From Mantamonas sphyraenae STR306 (Eukaryota > Protista > CRuMs), in the NCBI GenBank assembly GCA_026936335.1, contig JAPMXV010000070.1:239351-303350 (forward strand): a stretch of DNA of 64,000 nucleotides, given 5' to 3'. The notes under the pieces are model-generated. The model saw nothing but the letters and a program-made list of their open reading frames with translations. It had not been told where the DNA came from and ran no database searches. Both the position numbers and the translations under genes were made by a program. Below are positions 14,973 through 48,304 of this stretch, piece by piece (positions within the stretch are counted from its first letter, which is position 1; the number at the start of each line of letters is the position of its first letter).

Positions 14973-16774
14973 CTACCCTTTGATGACGGCAACGGGCCGC
15001 ATGCGTGCAACCTTTGAGGAGATGCCAGCAGCGTCGCAGGTGTCGACGACGGCGGTGACATCCTTGTAGCTCTCGTCGGCCTCTTCGACGACGAGCTTGG
15101 GGCTGGCGACACGGATGGAAATGCCCTTTGCGGCGAGTTTGTCGAGGACTTCTTTGTAGTTGAGCTCACGACGGCTCTTTGCGCGAGACTGGGCACGCCC
15201 TGCACCGTGGCAAGTGGAGCCAAAGGTGTCGCGCATGCCGACTTCTGTGCCTGTAAGGACGTAGGAATTGGTGCCCATGGTGCCGCCAATGAGGATGGGC
15301 TGACCGCAGAGCTGGTAGTCGACGGGAATGAGCGGATGGTGGGGACCAAAGGCGCGGGTGGCACCCTTGCGGTGGACGAGGAGACGACGGATCTTGCCAT
15401 CGACAAGATGCTCCTCAACCTTGGCAATGTTGTGGGAGACGTCGTAGATGACGTGCATGTCAAGGTCGTCCGGAGTGGAGTTGAAGGCCTTGGCAAAGGC
15501 CTGGCGTGTGAGGAAGGTCATGCTCTGGCGGTTGACCCATGCATAGTTGCTTGCAGCAGCCATGGCGTCGAGGTAGTCCTGTCCCTCTTGGCTGTGGATG
15601 CGGGCGCAGGAGAGCTGGCGGTCGTTGACGGTGATGCCGTCTCGGGCCATGGCCTTTTCCATGCTCTGGAGTGCGTCTGTGGCAACTTGGTGGCCGAGGC
15701 CACGGCTGCCACTGTGAATCATGACGCAAACCTGGCCCTCCTCCTCGAGGCCCATTTTGCTTGCGGCGCTGCGGTTGAAGAGCTTGTCGACGATTTGGAT
15801 TTCGGCGTAGTGGTTGCCTGCGCCGAGGGTGCCGAGCTGGGGCAGTCCACGCTTCTTTGCACGTGTGCCGACCTTGCTGGGGTCTGCATTGAGCATGCGG
15901 CCGTATTCTTCGCAGTGCTCCTTGTCCTCAGCCCAGGCGTAGCCCTCGCGGATGCTCCAGTCGAGGCCCATCTCGAGGGCCTCCTCGAGGGCATTGGAGG
16001 AGGTGGGGATGACGCCCTTGGAGCCGACGCCGACGGGGATATGGTTAAAGAGGGATTGGGTGAGGTCTTCCTTGATGTCTTTGAGGTCGCTTTCAAAGAG
16101 GTTTGTGCGGAGGAGGCGGACGCCGCAGTTGATGTCAAAGCCGACGCCACCTGGGGAGACGACGGCATCTGAGGAGTCCATGTCGAAGGCAGCGACGTTT
16201 CCTGTTGGAGAGGTTGGTGGAGGGAGGGGGGGGGAGGATTCGAGGATGAGTGGAAGGGAGTGTGTGGGGGGGAAGAGCATTGATCAGCATACCGATGGCA
16301 AAGCCGTAGCCAGAGTGGACGTCGGGGAGGCCGATGGAATACTGTGGGTGGTGGGAATGGAGTGGATTGTTGGAAGGGTTGGGGTGAGGAAGTGGGCGGG
16401 GGGAGCAGGGGGACCGTGCTTGGGTGGTCAGAGGCGGAGTGGCATTTTCTTGGATTTGGGTCCCAGAGGCCAGAGGCGGCGGCCACAGGATAGAGGGTGA
16501 GCGGGTAGGGACATACCTTGACAATGCCGGGGAGGGCGGCGACGTTTGCAATTTGTTTCATGGCCGGAAGGAAGCCAGACATGCGGTTGGTGCCGGAAAA
16601 GGCCTCGAGCTCGCCAAACATGAGCTTTTCGAGTTTGGAGTTGACGTAGAACTTGCCCGGGACGTTCATGTTTTCCACAAAGCCCTCGGAGATGGAGAAC
16701 TGGGTGTTGTCCACGCGCTGGACAAACTCGCACTCTTCCTCGTAGGTTCGGGAGGGGGTGGAAGACGAGGACAT
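14973..16774 (-). CDS. RTCB: RNA-splicing ligase RtcB (tRNA ligase), 3 exons (16774-16517, 16341-16293, 16201-14973)
   Basis: Motifs [50 protein letters not shown] and C-terminal AVIKG; GTATG...CAG introns. Confidence 0.97.
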
Positions 16775-37285: not shown

Positions 37286-37359
37286 AGACCGCGACGGGAC
37301 TTGAACCCGCAATCTCGAGTGCCGTAAACTCGCGCCTTATCCAATTTGGCCACGCGGTC
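37286..37359 (-). tRNA. tRNA-Arg(ACG), copy 1
   Basis: Full cloverleaf: GACCGCG/CGCGGTC acceptor, CGAGT-TTACGGC-ACTCG anticodon arm, GGTTCAAGTCC T-arm, oligo-T terminator. Confidence 0.97.
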
Positions 37360-40294: not shown

Positions 40295-43200
40295 TCAAAA
40301 CCACTCCTCCGCCTCAAATCCCTCCGCCCCCTGCGCCCAGAATTTGCCCATCTTGTCTTCCAACTTTGCCAGTCGCTGCTGCTGAGCGCGCGTGAGGACA
40401 TTGACGTCCGCGCCGTATGGCAGCAGCTCGCGAATCATCAGAACGGCGCTGTTGTCCACAGCATATGACAGCGGCGTTTGTGCTTGAAGCTCAAAGCCAC
40501 GGCGGACTCCCAACCCCCCCCAGTGTCGAGCCGGCTGAACATCTGCGTGGGGCAAACACACGTTCACGTTGGCACCAGCCTTGAGCAACAGAGCAGCAGA
40601 ACGCACTCTGTTGGCTGTCACAGCCACATAAAGCGGCGTCTGGCCACGGGTGTCTGTTGCATCCACCTTGGCTCCGTGATCCAACATCAACTTCGCCAGC
40701 GCAATGCTGCCGCACGTTGCGGCCGCGTGAAGCGGTGTACGCAATCCCGCCACGCCCCACATCTGGTTTCTGCCCTCCAAGCTGTCGCTGCACTCGTTGA
40801 CATCCACGCCAGCCTCCAGCAACGCCTCGCACGCAGACAGGGACCCGGCCGATGCAGCCAACAGCAGTGCAGTGTTCCCGTCGTAGTCCTTGGCATGTAC
40901 ATCGGCACCCAGCTCCACCAGCAGCGGCACCATGCCCGTGTGGCTTGCTGCCGCCAGCAGCAACGGTGTCCTTTGCATGGGCTCCACTCTCGCTTCCAAT
41001 GACGCTCCAGCTTCCACAAGCAGCTTCACCACGTCATATCTCTCTCTCATCACCGCCCCGTGCAACGCCGTGGCCCCCTTTGTGTCAGGAACGTCCACTT
41101 CTGCCCCAGCCGCGAGCAGAATCTGTACCAACTCCACCGAATCATGAAGAGCCGCCAGACGCAGGGGTAGCCATCTCACTGATTCGTATTCATCAGCGTT
41201 GAATGCAAACATGGCCCGCTGACGCTTTCCGTCCTGCGGATCCTGCTGTGGAACGCTACTCAGATTCACGTCGGCCCCAGCAGCAAGCAGAATCTTCACC
41301 TCCTGAACGGCGTTCAAGCGGCAGGCAGTGCTCAACGGCGTTGCTCCGTTCGAATTGAACCTGTCGACCTCTGCACCGCGACGCAGTAGCAGCTGCACAA
41401 GTTCGGGGTTCTTTGCTGACACCGCCATGTGCAGCGGCGTGGACTTCCGACGGTCGTGCTTGGTCTTGACCAGCCTTGTCCGTGCATTCGGGTCTGCTCC
41501 GTTGTCCAAAAGCCATTCGTAAAACGACAGCGGGTATGGTTCACAACACGCAGCCACCAGTGGCGAGAAAGCGTCCTCAGAGTCAGTGTTGGCCGGATCC
41601 GCTCCCGCCGCCACGAGCTTCTCTGCAAACTCGGGTAAATAGTAGCACGCATTTGCTAGCGTCACGCCGTCGTTTGGGTCCACACCTCGATCCAAGAGCA
41701 GCTCCAGCATGTCCATGTTCTTGACTCGCAACATGGTCTCCCAGTCGAACGGTTTCACCTTTGCTCCCGCATCCAGCAGCTTTTCAACCATATGCAGTGC
41801 TCCACTGTGCAAAGCAAGGAACAGCGGCGTGTTTCTGTGATTCCCGACATCCGGTGATGGGTCCGCTCCGGCATCAAGGAGAAGCGTGGCACAGCTGAGG
41901 TGACAGTTCTGCATTGCCAGCAACAGCGGCGTCACCTGATCACGGTTGAGCGGGTCCACAGGCGCGTCAGCCCCAATCAGGGTCTTTACACATGCTTCGT
42001 TGCCCGCATGCGATGCCACGTGCAACAGGGTGTCTCCGGCCGTGCTGTGTGCGCGTGCAGATCCTCCTGCTTCCAGGAGCAGCTTCAGGCATTCGTCGTC
42101 TGCGCCTGATTCGCACGCAAGGCGCAGGGACATGCCATCGACAGATGCGCCTGCGTCCAAAAGGATGCGCACCACAGAAGGCTGGTTGGTCGCACAGGCG
42201 ACATGAAGCGGAGTCGTTTCGTGTGACCAAGAGCCCTGGCTCGGCACGGCAATCTCGGGCGACACCCCGCACGTGTCCAACAACGCAGACACGACGTTTT
42301 CCATGTTGTGGAAAATGGCTGCGTGGATCAGTGTTTGCGTGCACTCGTCGCTGGTTGCAAGCGAAGGATCGTGTGCAATCAGTTCCAGCGCGACGTCGTC
42401 GTGTTTGTGTTCCACTGCAGTCACCAATGCGGTTGTGCCGTGCCTCTTTGCCGAAGCGTCCGCTCCGGCCTCCAGCAGTGTTTGCACACAAGTCAACCGG
42501 CCAATCTGCGCGGCTTGGACGATGGGGGAGCCCAGGTTTGGGTCTGCGCCACAGGCGATTAGTTGTGCCACAATCCCATCGTGTCCACCTTGCACGGCGA
42601 GATCGAGGACGCTGTGGTAGTGGTTGCTTCTCGTGTGCACGTCTGCTCCGTGTTCGATGAGCGGCAACACAAAGTCAAAGTGTCTGTTCTCAACCGCCAA
42701 CATCAACGCAGTCATGCCGTCTGCCTGGTTCACGGGGAAATCTACGGGGGCACCCGCCTCGATGAGAACGTGGAATAGCTCCTGATTGTTCTTTTCCACC
42801 GCCAGACTGATCGCAGACCAGCCCGAGCTTGCGTGCTGCTTCACGTCTGCTCCGGCATCCAGCAGCAGCTTGACAATCTCCACGTGTCCAGAAGAGCAGG
42901 CTGTGAGTAGTGGCGACGCGTGCACGTAAAAGTTGTTGTCGATGTTGGGATCGGCGCCTCGCTGCAGCAGAAGGGACACCACCTCGGTGTGCCCCTCTCT
43001 GGAGGCCATGGCCAGAGGTGTGTGCTCTCTGCGTTGCTCGCCATCCGGGTGACTGCCCTCATCCAGGCGTCGGCGCACCTCGTCTAGCAGACCACGCCCG
43101 GCCAGGACACCAAGTGACGGGCCGTCCTCTTCACCTTCACCGCCGTGTTTGCGCTCGTGCGCCCTTTTCCCAAACGCAGCCCTCTTGAACGATCGAGCAA

Positions 43201-44290
43201 CCGCTGTCTGTGACGCCTTGCCGGCCAGGCGTCGGCTATTGACCGTCTCGGCAAAGCGCATGTCGCGCTCATACGAGCTTCCGCGACGCACCTCACGATC
43301 GCTTGGGTCGATTCGGAACTTGGCCAGCAGCTCGTGCACGGGTGGCTGTCGATGCAGTGTTGGAAGAGCTGCGGTATCCTGCCAGGACAGCTCACCGTCG
43401 AGGAATTGATTGTCCTGCTCATGCTGCAGAAACTGGTTGAATTGGCCAAACTGTGCTCGGCTGTTGTCAAAGAACGGAGCGAAATTCTGCCTTTTGCTTC
43501 TGCGGCCAAACCGGGATCGTGCATCTTGTTCTGGTGCTTCTCCGTTGCTTGCTGTGGTGACGGTTGCCTTGTCAAAGATGCCCCGTCCAGATTTGGTGGT
43601 GATGTTGGGGTTTGAGCCGAACGGGTTGGAATTGGTGTTGGTGTTTGAGCCGAAGCGGCGGGTATTGTTGTGGGTTTTGTGCTTGCGAATGCCGAATCGA
43701 GAGGTACCTGTGTTGGTGGTGGGCTTGGGCTTTGAGCCGAAGCGGCTGGAGGTGTTGGTGTTGGTGTTGGTGTTGCGCTTGCCGAAGCCGCTGCGAGAGG
43801 TACCTGTGTTGGAGGTGGACTCGGAGTTGTTGGTGGTGGGCTTTGAGCCGAAGCGACTGGAGGTGTTGGTGTTGGTGTTGCGTTTGCCGAAACCGCTGCG
43901 AGAGGTACCTGTGTTGGAGGTGGACTCGGAGTTGTTGGTGGTGGGCTTTGAGCCGAAGGTGTTGGAGGTGTTGGTGTTGGTGTTGGGCTTGCCGAAGCCG
44001 CTGCGAGAGGTACCTGTGATGGAGGTGGACTCGGAGTCGGTGGTGGTGGGCTTTGAGCCGAAGCGACTGGAGGTGTTGGTGTTGGTGTTGGGCTTGCCGA
44101 AGCCGCTGCGAGAGGTACCTGTGTTGGAGGTGGACTCGGAGTCGGTGGTGGTGGGCTTTGAGCCGAAGGTGTTGGAGGTGTTGGTGTTGGTGTTGGGCTT
44201 GCCGAAGCCGCTGCGAGAGGTACCTGTGTTGGAGGTGGACTCGGACTCGTTCTTGGATTCGTCTGTGCAACGCATCGACGCATGTGCCAT
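40295..44290 (-). CDS. Large ankyrin-repeat protein (>20 repeats) with N-terminal S/T/N-rich FG repeats
   Basis: Intact 1331-aa ORF; many TPL..A ankyrin motifs. Confidence 0.92.
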   Translation of the reverse strand: MAHASMRCTDESKNESESTSNTGTSRSGFGKPNTNTNTSNTFGSKPTTTDSESTSNTGTSRSGFGKPNTNTNTSSRFGSKPTTTDSESTSITGTSRSGFGKPNTNTNTSNTFGSKPTTNNSESTSNTGTSRSGFGKRNTNTNTSSRFGSKPTTNNSESTSNTGTSRSGFGKRNTNTNTNTSSRFGSKPKPTTNTGTSRFGIRKHKTHNNTRRFGSNTNTNSNPFGSNPNITTKSGRGIFDKATVTTASNGEAPEQDARSRFGRRSKRQNFAPFFDNSRAQFGQFNQFLQHEQDNQFLDGELSWQDTAALPTLHRQPPVHELLAKFRIDPSDREVRRGSSYERDMRFAETVNSRRLAGKASQTAVARSFKRAAFGKRAHERKHGGEGEEDGPSLGVLAGRGLLDEVRRRLDEGSHPDGEQRREHTPLAMASREGHTEVVSLLLQRGADPNIDNNFYVHASPLLTACSSGHVEIVKLLLDAGADVKQHASSGWSAISLAVEKNNQELFHVLIEAGAPVDFPVNQADGMTALMLAVENRHFDFVLPLIEHGADVHTRSNHYHSVLDLAVQGGHDGIVAQLIACGADPNLGSPIVQAAQIGRLTCVQTLLEAGADASAKRHGTTALVTAVEHKHDDVALELIAHDPSLATSDECTQTLIHAAIFHNMENVVSALLDTCGVSPEIAVPSQGSWSHETTPLHVACATNQPSVVRILLDAGASVDGMSLRLACESGADDECLKLLLEAGGSARAHSTAGDTLLHVASHAGNEACVKTLIGADAPVDPLNRDQVTPLLLAMQNCHLSCATLLLDAGADPSPDVGNHRNTPLFLALHSGALHMVEKLLDAGAKVKPFDWETMLRVKNMDMLELLLDRGVDPNDGVTLANACYYLPEFAEKLVAAGADPANTDSEDAFSPLVAACCEPYPLSFYEWLLDNGADPNARTRLVKTKHDRRKSTPLHMAVSAKNPELVQLLLRRGAEVDRFNSNGATPLSTACRLNAVQEVKILLAAGADVNLSSVPQQDPQDGKRQRAMFAFNADEYESVRWLPLRLAALHDSVELVQILLAAGAEVDVPDTKGATALHGAVMRERYDVVKLLVEAGASLEARVEPMQRTPLLLAAASHTGMVPLLVELGADVHAKDYDGNTALLLAASAGSLSACEALLEAGVDVNECSDSLEGRNQMWGVAGLRTPLHAAATCGSIALAKLMLDHGAKVDATDTRGQTPLYVAVTANRVRSAALLLKAGANVNVCLPHADVQPARHWGGLGVRRGFELQAQTPLSYAVDNSAVLMIRELLPYGADVNVLTRAQQQRLAKLEDKMGKFWAQGAEGFEAEEWF
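43600..44245 (-). repeat. Coding tandem repeat, 105-bp (35-aa) unit SESTSNTGTSRSGFGKPNTNTNTS..FGSKPTT, about 5 copies plus degenerate ends
   Basis: Directly visible repeated gaggtacctgtgttggaggtggactcgga units. Confidence 0.9.
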
Positions 44291-44845
44291 CGCTGAGGGT
44301 TAGCAAAATTCTGAGCAAGATTGACTGTGTGACCAGAGGCACCCAACGTCGTGCGGTCTCGAGCAACTCCATTCCGTGCACTGCGCGGATCTGGGAGGGA
44401 CGCACTGCACAAAATTTCAGGTCGTCCTCGCTCTCCACTTGACCTGCTGAAACTACACCGCCAATACACAACTCACCCTCAGTACCAGTCAAAGCTCGAG
44501 ATTCCTTCGGTGCAGCGTTCGAAGCCACATGGCGTGCGTGAGTGGGTTGTGTGCGATGGACAAGCACTGAATACGCCCCCTCCGGCCATGCAAGACCACA
44601 TGACCAACCTACTCTTTCTCCTTGGGTTGCCTCCCTCTCGCGTTGACTATGGACGAATCTGCTTCTCATGATCTCTTTGTGAAGGAATTCGTGGATGTGC
44701 CGCCGCGAGCACGCTCAACTTCTCATCTTCCTGAGTGCAAGCACAGGCACGCTTCATCTCTTTGGAGGTGTTGATGTCAAGTTAATCTTCAATTGCAGAC
44801 GAGGTGTCTCTGCTTTGCCCCTCTGTAGCATACGGTGATTCTGTC

Positions 44846-44854
44846 TGGTCGCAG
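44846..44854 (+). promoter_or_regulatory. Candidate Pol III upstream element TGGTCGCAG (also 45169-45177 on +, 37429-37437 on -, and TGGTCGCA-like in each 39-40 kb unit)
   Basis: Identical 9-mer in sense orientation about 65-85 nt upstream of all three tRNA genes. Confidence 0.6.
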
Positions 44855-44929
44855 ATATGCTCTCTCATACATGCAAGCCATGTTTCTATATTCACAGATC
44901 GACCCTCTGTATCGAACAACAACACTCAT

Positions 44930-45051
44930 TGATTCCATGTTAGGGTCATGGAGGTCCCGGGTTCAATTCCCGGCGAACCCCTTCTTTCGAATCTCAGGAC
45001 GGCTCCGGTTGATCTGGGATGAGAGATTTCGGGTTCGTGGTCTAGGGGTAT
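44930..45051 (+). tRNA. Circularly permuted tRNA-Pro(AGG): 3' part 44930-44981, 49-nt spacer, 5' part 45031-45050
   Basis: 3' part: TGATT-CCATG-TTAGGGT-CATGG-AGGTC-CCGGG-TTCAATT-CCCGG-CGAACCC-C. Downstream 5' part: GGGTTCG-TG-GTCT-AGGGGTA. Perfect 7-bp acceptor pairing; leader GAACAACA pairs with trailer TGTTGTTC; oligo-T follows. Confidence 0.9.
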
Positions 45052-45060
45052 GACATGTTG

Positions 45061-45085
45061 TTCTTTCTTTTCTCTTTTTTTTTTT
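45061..45085 (+). terminator. Oligo-T Pol III terminator of the permuted tRNA
   Basis: T-rich run ending in T11 right after the trailer. Confidence 0.8.
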
Positions 45086-45241
45086 GCTGTGAATGAACGC
45101 TACTCCTCAGGCGTGCGTGATGCAGGTGGTGCTCCTGTTCCGCTTCTTTCTTTTCCCTCCTTGCCGTCTGGTCGCAGGGCGGAGTCTGCGAGACCTGATG
45201 GCAAGATCGTCTACTGGAAAATGTCTTGCAGTATCGAAAGC

Positions 45242-45315
45242 GACCGCGTGGCCAAATTGGATAAGGCGCGAGTTTACGGCACTCGAGATTGCGGGTTCAA
45301 GTCCCGTCGCGGTCT
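45242..45315 (+). tRNA. tRNA-Arg(ACG), copy 2
   Basis: Identical to 37286-37359, inverted; oligo-T downstream. Confidence 0.97.
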
Positions 45316-46003
45316 TTCTTTTTCATTTTTTTTGTGCGAGGTGGTGACGACACTGCCGACGTTCGGCTGAGGCAATGCGCTGCGTGCGCGCACCATTGGG
45401 TTGCAGACGAATGCTGGTCAACGCAGTCAACGCAGTCAACGCATTCGGTGCTTTGGGTGGCAGCAGCCTCCCTTGTCGATGCACGACAAACACAACTGAG
45501 AAAAGGAGATGGACCGACAAGGTGGGTTGATGACAAAGGTCGGGGTGTCGTTTTGTCAACGTTGGTGGTGGTGGGCAGCTGGGGCTGCGTTCAACCGCCT
45601 TCTTCCGTGTTGGCGGAAGGAGGGTGGTGGATGGCGCCGAAGAACAAAGTGGCAAAGGAACGTCGTGCTGCCCCCCACGCACCACAGAAGGCCAAGCCTC
45701 GGCAATCCATGCAGTGGTTGACTGCACGATGCGTAGGACGACGCATCGGGCAGTCAGGAAACAACGGGACGTCGGGGCTGGGTGGGGAGGGAGTTGGGTA
45801 TGCACAGGGTGCTTGGCAAGCACAGCAGCACAGCAGCATGCAACGCATCTAACAACCAGCACATGCTCACAGATTCTGAGGGTAGGTGAATTGGGTGTAT
45901 GGAGAACGTGTAGAGTGCCGCAGAAGGGAAAAGGGAAAGAGAGGGAAAGGGAGGTGCGCATTGGCTCACAACAGGCAAAGCAGACGTAACGGGCCCGCTG
46001 GAG

Positions 46004-48304
46004 ATGGTTGATTGGGTGGAACTGCTGGAGAGTGGAGATCATGAACGGATTTGCAGGGCACTGGAGGCAGAGGGAGAGGTGGGTTGGGACTGGGACGCAG
46101 AGTGACGTCGTGGGGCAACAACGGAGTGTGTGCTGACACGCGGGGCACAGGAAACGAATATTGATGACGATGTTGCGCTGGAAGACAATGATGTAGTAGC
46201 GCTGGCCAAGGCGCTAAGGAAGAACAGCACCTTGAAGACACTGCTGCTCGGGGGGAACAGCATCGGAACACAAGGAGCAGCAGCACTCGGGCAGGCACTG
46301 TGTGAGAACAGCAGCTTGCAGACCTTGGACCTCAGCTACAACTGCATCGGAGCAGAAGGAGCAGGAGCACTGGGGCAGGCACTGAGTGAGAACAACAGCT
46401 TGCAGACACTGAACCTCAACGGTAACAGGATCGGGGCAGAAGGCGTAGCAGCACTGGGGCAGGGACTGAGTAAGAACAGCAGCTTACAGGCATTGAGTCT
46501 TTGGGATACCAGCATCGGGGATGAAGGAGCCGCAGCACTGGCGCAGGCGCTGAGTGACAACAACAGCTTGCAGACACTGAACCTCAGGAGCAACAGCATC
46601 GCCGGCGAGGGAACAGCAGCACTGGTGAAGGGACTGTGTGAGAACCTCAGCTTGCAAGTACTGGACCTCTGGGACAACAGCATCGGTGTAGAAGGAGCAG
46701 CAGTGCTGGCGCAGGGACTGAGGGTGAACAGCAGCTTGCGGACACTAACCCTTGGTAGAAACAGTATCGGAGCAGAAGGAGCAGTTGCACTTGCTCGGGC
46801 ACTGAGTGAGAACAGCACCTTGCAGACACTGAATCTCTGGGACAACAGCGTCGGGGATGAAGGAGCCGCAGCGCTTGAGCAGGCACTCAGTGAGAACAAC
46901 AGCTTGCAGACACTGGTCCTTAGGAACAACAGCATTGCAGACGAGGGAGCAGCAGCACTAGCGAAGGGACTGTGCAAGAACAGCAGGTTGCAAACACTGG
47001 ACCTCGGGAGCAACAGCATCGGGGCAGAGGGAACAGCAGCGCTGGCGCATGCGCTGAATGAGAACAACTGCTTGCATCGACTGAATCTCAACAACAACAG
47101 CATCGAGGCAGAAGGAGCAGCAGCACTGGCACGGGGATTGCGGGTGAACAGCAGCTTGCAGACGCTGAATCTCTGGGACAACAGCATCGGGGATGAAGGA
47201 GCCGCAGCACTTGAGCAGGCACTCAGTGAGAACAACAGCTTGCAGACACTGAACCTCAGGAACAACAGCATCGCAGGCGAGGGAGCAGCGGCACTGGCGA
47301 AGGGATTGTGTGAGAACAGCAGCTTGCAAACACTGGACCTCGGGAACAACAGCATCGGGGCAGAAGGAGCAGCAGTGCTGGCGCATGCGCTGAATGAGAA
47401 CAACTGCCTGCAGACACTGGACCTCAACAACAACAGCGTTGAGGCAGAAGGAGCAGCATCACTGGCGCAGGCACTGAATGGGAGCAGCTTGCAGACACTG
47501 AGCCTCAGCTACAACAGCATCGAGGACGAAGGAGCCGCAGCACTGGCGCAGGCACTGAATGGGAGCAGCTTGCAGACACTGAACCTCAGGAACAACAGTA
47601 TCGGGGCAGAAGGGGCAGCAGCAATGGCACAGGCACTGAGCGAGAGCAGCTTGCAGACACTGGACCTCAACAACAACAGCATTGTGGACGAAGGAGCAGC
47701 GGCAATTGCACGGGGATTGCGGGTGAACCGCAGCTTGCAGACACTGAACCTCAGGAGCAACAACATCGGTGCAGAAGGAGCAGCAGCACTGACAGAGGCG
47801 ATGGAAGTCAATAGGTCGTGCTGCAGCATCGAGGACGTTCACGGTGACGCGTTGGAGTCACTGTTGGAGAGAAACAGGAATCAGCATGAAGAGTTTGTGG
47901 AATGTGGGGATGTGGAGAAGATGGCTGCGTTGAAGGAGTGGGGTGTGCCTGTGGACACCTTTGCAGGGGTTAGGGGGAGGAAAACTGCGCTGGAGAGGGC
48001 AGTGAAGCGTGGGGATGAGAGGATTGTGGATGTGCTGCGGGCTTGGGGTGCGAAGCCAAGGGTGAGAACGGTGGAGATGGTGAGGGAGGAAGGGTGGAGG
48101 AAGGCGTGGCATTGGATTGGATGGGTTGGACAGGTGGATGAAGCGATGGAGGTGGCGTTGGTGATGAATGGGGAGGAGAGGGAGGCGATGTTTGCGTGCG
48201 GTGGGATGGAGGAGTATGTGGAGGAGGGAGGGTGGGAAGGGTGGGTGACACTGCCAGATGAGGTGATGGAGAGGGTGATTGGGTGGGTAGGGAGGAAAGT
48301 GTGA
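46004..48304 (+). CDS. RI/NLR-type LRR protein copy 1 (19 LRRs + ankyrin-like element + C-terminal F-box-like module); intron 46079-46150
   Basis: 28-aa NxxLxxLxLxxNxIxxEGAxxLxxxL repeats; exon 1 MVDWVELLESGDHERICRALEAEGE. Confidence 0.92.

Follow-up and report, generated by a model that had tools for sequence, protein, structure and literature searches.

Circularly permuted proline tRNA genes in the heterotrophic protist Mantamonas sphyraenae

In a 64,000-nt window of the Mantamonas sphyraenae STR306 genome (GenBank assembly GCA_026936335.1, contig JAPMXV010000070.1, positions 239,351 to 303,350), we find a tRNA-Pro(AGG) gene whose 3′ portion precedes its 5′ portion, both on the forward strand, at window positions 44847-45085. 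Its sequence features make it highly probable that this locus is a functional, circularly permuted nuclear tRNA-Pro(AGG) gene, and one of four that are apparently the sole nuclear tRNA-Pro genes of the organism. This is the first extension of permuted tRNA architecture to a host that is neither an alga nor an archaeon. The original prediction, drawn from the letters of the window alone, had proposed such a gene here, and each of its coordinates agrees with the sequence. Its reading is supported, and is strengthened by the recovery of a whole proline family (AGG, two copies of CGG, and UGG) in permuted order.

Catalogued permuted tRNA genes numbered 34 by 2014, in Cyanidioschyzon merolae, four prasinophytes, the Bigelowiella nucleomorph and Thermofilum pendens, with spacers of 1-74 bp and junctions at 20/21, 37/38, 50/51 or 59/60 (PMC3978253). 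Auxenochlorella, a trebouxiophyte with TTAGGG telomeres, was added in a 2025 preprint (PMC12633428), and a 2026 review still confines permutation to certain algae and archaea (PMC13578239). The M. sphyraenae genome paper never mentions tRNA (PMC10492846), and we found no paper on permuted or nuclear tRNA genes in Mantamonas in the literature outside most subscription journals. The earlier distribution, comprising red and green algae, a green-alga-derived nucleomorph and one archaeon, left an algal quirk, archaeal inheritance and recurrent invention open as explanations.

CRuMs, the supergroup of Mantamonas, is heterotrophic and branches at the base of Amorphea, far from any alga. No chlorophyll a/b-binding proteins are found in the genome, which argues against a photosynthetic alga. 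The suspicion that this DNA represents a new lineage with tRNA permutation is therefore borne out by its host, a heterotrophic CRuMs protist, but the argument first offered for it does not hold: TTAGGG telomeres had been taken to exclude all known carriers, and Auxenochlorella combines such telomeres with permuted tRNAs (PMC12633428). The FALCON assembly of M. sphyraenae comprises 25.06 Mb in 78 contigs (59.19% GC, N50 375,077 bp), with TTAGGG repeats at most contig ends (PMC10492846); the window has a GC content of 59.6% and ends in TTAGGG repeats.

A permuted tRNA-Pro family

The 3′ piece of the AGG gene comprises the 3′ strand of the D-stem, a CCATG/CATGG anticodon stem around TTAGGGT, the segment AGGTC, a CCGGG/CCCGG T-arm and the acceptor 3′ strand CGAACCC, followed by the discriminator C; CCA is not encoded. 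The 5′ piece, present only once in the genome, supplies the acceptor 5′ strand, U8, the 5′ strand of the D-stem and the D-loop (Table 1). Since TGA occurs in both pieces, as the original prediction had recognized, the 5′ piece may extend to 45053. When 45031-45050 is joined to 44930-44981, ARAGORN recognizes the resulting 72-nt sequence as tRNA-Pro(agg), and its acceptor stem is paired at 7/7 positions. The product is thus the canonical tRNA-Pro that had been anticipated, with all universal positions intact (U8, A14, G18G19, A21, U33, T54-T55-C56, A58 and C73).

In its unswapped order, the AGG locus gave no report with ARAGORN or Rfam, and a permissive Rfam threshold added only noise below gathering scores. 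The sole calls near the locus are the neighbouring tRNA-Arg(ACG) genes at 37286-37359 and 45242-45315, in line with the expectation that standard tRNA scans would overlook a gene of this kind. The minimum-free-energy fold of the AGG precursor contains the helix between leader and trailer together with an acceptor stem closed by the spacer hairpin GAATCTC/GAGATTT, and so recovers both the leader-trailer pairing and the foldable 49-nt spacer described earlier.

Table 1. Features of the AGG locus and the RtcB reading frame in the window
Feature	Position	Strand	Remarks
3′ piece	44930-44981	+	tRNA positions 22-73; anticodon AGG at 44942-44944
Spacer	44982-45030	+	49 nt; forms the loop closing the acceptor stem and holds its own hairpin
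5′ piece	45031-45050	+	tRNA positions 1-21: GGGTTCG, TG, GTCT, AGGGGTA
Leader strand of outer helix	44914-44921	+	GAACAACA; 8 Watson-Crick pairs with 45056-45063
Trailer strand of outer helix	45056-45063	+	TGTTGTTC
Leader ACTC, candidate strand of central 4-bp helix	44924-44927	+	pairs with D-loop GGGT at 45046-45049
Upstream GGTCGC element	44847-44852	+	context CTGGTCGCAGAT; distance to the 3′ piece 83 nt, to the leader helix ~67 nt
TATATT, TATA-like AT-rich box	44887-44892	+	~22-27 nt ahead of the leader helix; direct reading of the sequence
T-rich run ending in T11, likely RNA polymerase III terminator	45064-45085	+	direct reading of the sequence
RtcB RNA ligase open reading frame	14973-16280	-	Pfam PF01139, E = 3.7e-148

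Four permuted Pro genes were identified in the genome, one for AGG, two for CGG and one for UGG, and every junction falls in the D-loop or D-arm. The CGG genes are inverted copies at approximately 110.4 kb (+) and 118.3 kb (-) of contig C70, 128.8 kb upstream on the contig that carries the AGG gene; each has a 13-nt spacer and a 5′ piece that terminates at GTCTAGTG. The UGG gene (C42:619382) has a 7-nt spacer and a 5′ piece terminating at GTCTA. All three spacer lengths (49, 13 and 7 nt) lie within the known range of 1-74 bp. Exact matches to the Pro-type T-arm occur genome-wide in just four places, namely these four genes. A BLAST-type genome search with the AGG 3′ piece returned only the self-match; the sister genes are too diverged for it.

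Once swapped, the AGG, CGG and UGG sequences are 72 nt each and are all called as Pro by ARAGORN. U8, A14, G18G19, A21, U33, TTC, A58 and C73 are common to the three isoacceptors. Eight stem pairs vary among them, and in 8/8 both sides are altered with pairing kept. Half of these variable pairs (4/8) belong to the acceptor stem, whose strands reside in different gene pieces on either side of the spacer. Chance is excluded because three further permuted Pro genes exist with compensatory stem changes. The genes lack the marks of pseudogenes, their stems being intact, their copy number one or two, and one gene set being present per needed anticodon. Nor do they resemble split genes, as the pieces are 7-49 nt apart and leave no space for a second promoter.

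Most tRNA genes here form identical, inverted pairs 4-12 kb apart, for example C52:268318/273877, C31:11192/16261, C70:276636/284592 and C70:110476/118252.

Searches for a colinear tRNA-Pro and assembly checks

The original prediction had called for a check on whether a conventional tRNA-Pro(AGG) exists. Four independent searches of the genome (25,061,354 bases, 78 contigs), based on a tRNA model, a D-arm pattern, a T-arm pattern and a model of the 3′ portion, found no colinear tRNA-Pro. The Rfam tRNA model identified at least 58 genes, all typed and covering 19 amino acids, none of them Pro. A contiguous Pro D-arm, a trait of colinear genes only, was absent at up to three mismatches, apart from the AGG 5′ piece and two chance-level matches. 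Both of the latter are three-mismatch matches on C39, a contig with no Pro T-arm, and a reversed-pattern control gave one match.

The covariance model of the 3′ portion spans positions 27-73 and was built from 19 colinear tRNAs of this genome and zero Pro sequences. It nonetheless recovers 4/4 permuted 3′ pieces at 40-44 bits, with 40.1 bits for AGG, and so provides an independent positive control. Among its best candidates, all other matches at or above 27 bits are typed colinear tRNAs, intron-containing tRNAs or dead fragments. Overall, the assembly appears to contain no nuclear source of tRNA-Pro other than the permuted genes, a conclusion for which these searches constitute strong evidence rather than proof. 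The genes recovered leave Tyr, Leu(CAG/UAG), Ala(CGC) and Arg(CCG) unaccounted for, and some junction types lie outside the reach of the 27-73 model.

Several candidates were rejected along the way. The ARAGORN calls of a 'tRNA-Pro with a 247-nt intron' and a 'Val with a 267-nt intron' in L002 are artefacts. Orphan tRNA 3′ fragments of Phe (C34:613503-613537 and C34:623873-623907) and Ile (C34:419098-419144) were considered as permuted genes and dismissed, as no 5′ piece follows and their downstream flanks are copied from neighbouring genes. Most tRNA genes are carried on inverted-repeat structures, and these fragments resemble dead by-products of them.

Read runs of DNA type from one study were placed as contigs on window positions 43001-47000. 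Two short-read de Bruijn contigs, X1 (917 nt) and X2 (916 nt), each run as a single contig, collinear with the window, across 44216-45131. They differ from the window by 13 substitutions and 2 indels, none of which falls within 44876-45091 (chance of such a gap ~0.02-0.03). M. sphyraenae is reported to be diploid (PMC10492846), and the differences most likely represent the other haplotype of the same culture. The collinearity of X1 and X2 means that the gene order is no artefact of long-read assembly, so the order passes the test for local misassembly across the entire locus.

Coverage in two further sets, X3 and X4, is confined to coding regions (exons), and a GT..AG joint is present, so they are probably poly(A) RNA-seq data. 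In the same region, X3 contains a 72-nt GT..AG joint (46076-46149) at the start of an LRR gene, which is evidence of an intron. Over the LRR repeat units at 46217-46618, the depth of contigs increases 50-100-fold, and several joints skip repeats.

Junctions, splicing enzymes and promoter elements

By homology, the junctions lie between 21/22 and 24/25 in AGG, at 18/19 in CGG and at 14/15 in UGG. Each is associated with a central helix of 4-5 bp, formed by GGGT/ACTC in AGG, TAGT(G)/(T)ACTA in CGG and GGTC(T)/(A)GACT in UGG. For AGG, enumeration of helix-bulge arrangements and cofolding also gave an alternative central helix between TCAT (44926-44929) and ATGA (45050-45053). The enumeration places a leader-trailer helix beyond a bulge in all three genes, and both homology-inferred cuts lie 3′ of the central-helix strands in all three, which is the geometry of a bulge-helix-bulge (BHB). 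Canonical spacing, in which each cut falls 2 nt into its bulge, is seen in UGG alone. The strict hBHBh′ motif was sought in all three genes and was not found for AGG or CGG.

The leader-trailer helices of the three genes are unrelated in sequence and 5-8 bp each. For AGG, the cognate duplex has a predicted energy of -10.4 kcal/mol, versus -0.8 to -3.4 kcal/mol with the trailers of the other genes, and only 15/2000 shuffled leaders reach the cognate value. Across the family, cognate duplexes amount to -10.4, -11.5 and -12.8 kcal/mol and non-cognate combinations to -0.8 to -4.4 kcal/mol, with 0.55-2% of shuffled leaders matching the cognate energy. We describe the junctions as putative relaxed, BHB-like structures. 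The relaxed junction envisaged for AGG at the outset survives in part: the central 4-bp GGGT/ACTC helix and the 8-bp outer helix exist, but the bulges are non-canonical.

The enzymes expected to act on such precursors are encoded in the genome. Two genes, located at C55:27308 and C62:24354, carry the splicing-endonuclease catalytic domain PF01974 (matches of 74 and 53.5 bits), and an RtcB open reading frame lies in the window itself. Its proximity to the tRNA gene, earlier judged probably coincidental, is indeed coincidental: the distance is ~29 kb and the enzyme is widely conserved among eukaryotes. A proposal to place the organism phylogenetically using RtcB proved impractical, as its eukaryotic homologs are 74-81% identical across every supergroup with no close relative among them. 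Four proteins encoded in the window had no exact-sequence match. The reading frame encodes 435 aa versus ~505 aa in homologs and aligns from its residue 24; the N-terminal ~70 aa are probably encoded on an upstream exon.

Disruptions of the D-arm extend to other tRNAs of this genome. Both copies of elongator tRNA-Met(CAU), L046 (C54:420319-420420) and L047 (C54:426057-426158), have a 29-nt intron at 22/23 in the D-arm, with junction helices as relaxed as those of the permuted Pro genes; their ARAGORN label, Arg(tcg), is an artefact. The tRNA-Arg(UCU) gene L152 (C1:187261-187320, minus strand, plus ~60 nt upstream) has a ~26-nt D-loop intron after A14 and a canonical ~13-nt intron at 37/38, and GGTCGCAA is located ~74 nt upstream of it. 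Splicing machinery must therefore already act in the D-arm region. On the same contig, tRNA-Ile(UAU) (L153, C1:190555-190675), mislabelled Ala(tgc) by ARAGORN, has a canonical intron of ~46 nt.

The hexamer GGTCGC occurs upstream of 38/55 distinct colinear tRNA regions (150 nt each) at a median position of -76, compared with a chance expectation of 3.6% per 150 nt (binomial P ~3e-42). Relative to the 3′ piece, it starts at -83 in AGG (44847), -80 in UGG and -103 in CGG copy b; in AGG and UGG it precedes the leader helix by ~66-67 nt. Within the window, GGTCGC(A/G) is present at 44847 and 45170, and it lies ~76 nt upstream of most tRNA genes. GGTCGC is likely a PSE-like (proximal sequence element-like) external promoter element for RNA polymerase III (Pol III), a function suggested by its position and recurrence. 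Were the element and the start site spaced as they are in colinear genes, the start would coincide approximately with the first leader-helix base. The TATATT box may also contribute to the promoter, by analogy with the upstream TATA-like boxes of permuted genes in C. merolae (PMC3978253). T-runs directly follow the trailer helix in all permuted genes, and T-runs also follow all colinear tRNA genes. At AGG, the upstream signals (GGTCGC at 44847, TATATT at 44887) and the T-run to 45085 bracket both pieces as one unit.

Competing explanations and known systems

Together, these features suggest a route from the permuted AGG gene to a mature tRNA. Pol III would start ~65-70 nt downstream of the GGTCGC (GGCGC-type) element used at most tRNA genes. 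Because the promoter would lie upstream, inverted internal A/B boxes would be tolerated and their reversed order would be without consequence; parallel reasoning has been applied to C. merolae (PMC3978253). A single Pol III RNA would contain leader, 3′ piece, spacer, 5′ piece and trailer and end at the T-run. Its 8-bp leader-trailer helix and 4-bp central D-loop helix have the potential to form a relaxed BHB-like fold, which may be the structure adopted in vivo. The tRNA splicing endonuclease could then cut both strands and RtcB join the D-loop ends, giving a circular intermediate from which RNase P and tRNase Z would excise the 49-nt spacer in the acceptor loop before CCA is added.

Several points weigh against this reading. 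The AGG and CGG junctions are not strict BHBs, having bulges of 2-6 nt and cuts offset from the central helix by 1 and 2 nt in AGG and by 0-1 and 3 nt in CGG, and the AGG cut is itself ambiguous between 21/22 and 24/25 owing to the TGA repeat. CGG copy a lacks GGTCGC. The genome searches score best candidates only, so their results are lower bounds. X1 and X2 probably derive from the same culture as the assembly, and so test the assembly method and a second haplotype rather than an independent strain. X3 and X4 have zero depth over the tRNA locus, although such data are uninformative for a Pol III small RNA.

The most serious alternative concerns the route rather than the gene. The genes could be permuted and functional and yet form no circle: RNase P and tRNase Z would act first, the halves would be held together, and the D-loop would be joined later, as in split tRNAs. 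The short spacers of UGG (7 nt) and CGG (13 nt) are compatible with this order of events, and the acceptor stem plus a leader-trailer helix of 5-8 bp could hold the halves. However, circular intermediates were detected in the red and green algae that were tested, with junction processing first (PMC3978253), and we consider the circle-free route improbable.

Far less credible is that the AGG locus is a rearranged tRNA pseudogene, a relic of tandem duplication, with functional tRNA-Pro supplied by colinear genes that were missed. Dead fragments do exist in this genome (Phe at C34:613503 and C34:623873, Ile at C34:419098), and genome searches that are lower bounds leave some room for missed genes. 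In contrast to the Pro loci, however, the dead Phe and Ile fragments have no downstream 5′ partner. The four loci match exactly the three Pro anticodons that a eukaryote needs, all their stems are intact via compensatory changes, each has a matched leader-trailer helix and a terminator, and three of the four have the promoter element. No variant separates the haplotypes within the gene, and none of the four independent searches recovered a colinear Pro gene. A local misassembly, for which no supporting point was found, has a negligible chance of explaining the permuted order, as X1 (917 nt) and X2 (916 nt) span the locus collinearly and the permuted order is repeated at three further loci, on two contigs.

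A functional, permuted proline family in Mantamonas broadens the phylogenetic spread of permuted architecture to a new supergroup. It also offers a culturable organism in which the permutation pathway would be essential, as there seems to be no colinear backup, and it connects an upstream Pol III promoter element with tolerance of permuted genes. Standard annotation will list proline tRNAs as missing here, and probably in other protist genomes too. The three different D-loop junction positions might reflect repeated permutation or junction migration. More speculatively, disrupted tRNA genes, whether permuted or interrupted by D-arm introns, might be no algal peculiarity. They might arise, or persist from early eukaryotes, wherever Pol III relies on an upstream element (here GGTCGC at ~-76) rather than internal A/B boxes and the endonuclease keeps a structure-guided BHB mode, with the whole of an essential isoacceptor family, proline, fixed in permuted form. 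We advance this broader idea tentatively and regard it as rather unlikely to hold in full.

Metagenome contigs were scanned for a Pro T-arm followed within 20-50 nt by the start of a Pro D-arm; the scan yielded 94 stretches, of which 81 matches in 80 loci were classified. Most matches were rejected as permuted genes, since they belong to a termite-gut repeat family with no acceptor pairing. This abundant repeat (L056, L058, L060 and ~45 other contigs) has a tRNA-Pro-like T-arm, then a conserved 33-nt hairpin plus GTGACCATGGTCTA, and looks like a tRNA-derived SINE (short interspersed element). Another ~18 matches, with 6/7-7/7 acceptor match, proved to be closely spaced tandem colinear Pro genes, mostly Pro-Pro dimers from soil ~7 nt apart. 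The conserved soil and rhizosphere dimer consists of a tRNA-Pro(AGG) and a tRNA-Pro(CGG) gene, both colinear and intron-containing, 6-9 nt apart and with the same acceptor stem (L063, L069, L070, L089, L097, L098, L100, L102, L114, L115, L118, L119, L124, L131, L133, L134); it is a probable dicistronic unit of a soil eukaryote. Tandem Pro dimers illustrate the type of precursor called for by a model in which permuted genes originate from tandem duplication.

Only two of the metagenome Pro genes are truly permuted: L064 (LKMJ01004531.1, UGG) and L091 (Ga0302122_10002167, AGG, 67% GC), the latter with a second orphan T-arm piece just upstream. Both have junctions at 37/38 and probably come from green algae. 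No environmental relative with a D-loop junction like those of the Mantamonas genes was present among the 81 classified matches.

Compared with known systems, the Mantamonas genes would share a mature tRNA built from pieces joined at a BHB-like helix with the split tRNAs of Nanoarchaeum and Caldivirga. Those pieces have separate loci and promoters, whereas in Mantamonas 7-49 nt separate the pieces, which sit between a single likely promoter element and a single likely terminator. The permuted genes of T. pendens (Chan et al. 2011, PMC3218864) have the same reversed order and a BHB-dependent maturation like that proposed for Mantamonas, but belong to an archaeon, have their junction at 59/60 in the T-loop, encode CCA and have spacers of 1-7 nt. 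Green algae (Ostreococcus and Micromonas, Maruyama et al. 2010; Auxenochlorella, PMC12633428) and the Bigelowiella nucleomorph likewise carry eukaryotic nuclear permuted genes missed by standard scans, and Auxenochlorella further resembles Mantamonas in its TTAGGG telomeres and a genome of ~22 Mb. In contrast, green-algal junctions mostly fall within the anticodon loop, at 37/38, and Mantamonas is without chlorophyll a/b-binding proteins. Type I junctions are defined at exactly 20/21 in the D-loop; those of Mantamonas lie in the same tRNA arm at other positions.

The closest resemblance is to C. merolae (Soma et al. 2007; PMC3978253), above all to its type I architecture; in that alga, too, permuted genes are found together with non-canonical introns and with promoters that lie upstream. 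In both organisms, the 3′ portion is upstream, the spacer is short, leader and trailer pair at the junction, promoter signals precede and a T-stretch follows the gene, CCA is not encoded, and introns at non-canonical positions occur in the same genome. Mantamonas differs in being a heterotrophic CRuMs flagellate rather than an alga, and in that its permuted tRNA is proline, with an entire isoacceptor family affected. Its junctions all lie in the D-loop or D-arm (~14/15, 18/19 and 21-24), where C. merolae has one such example, its predicted BHB is more relaxed, and a conserved GGTCGC accompanies the TATA-like box.

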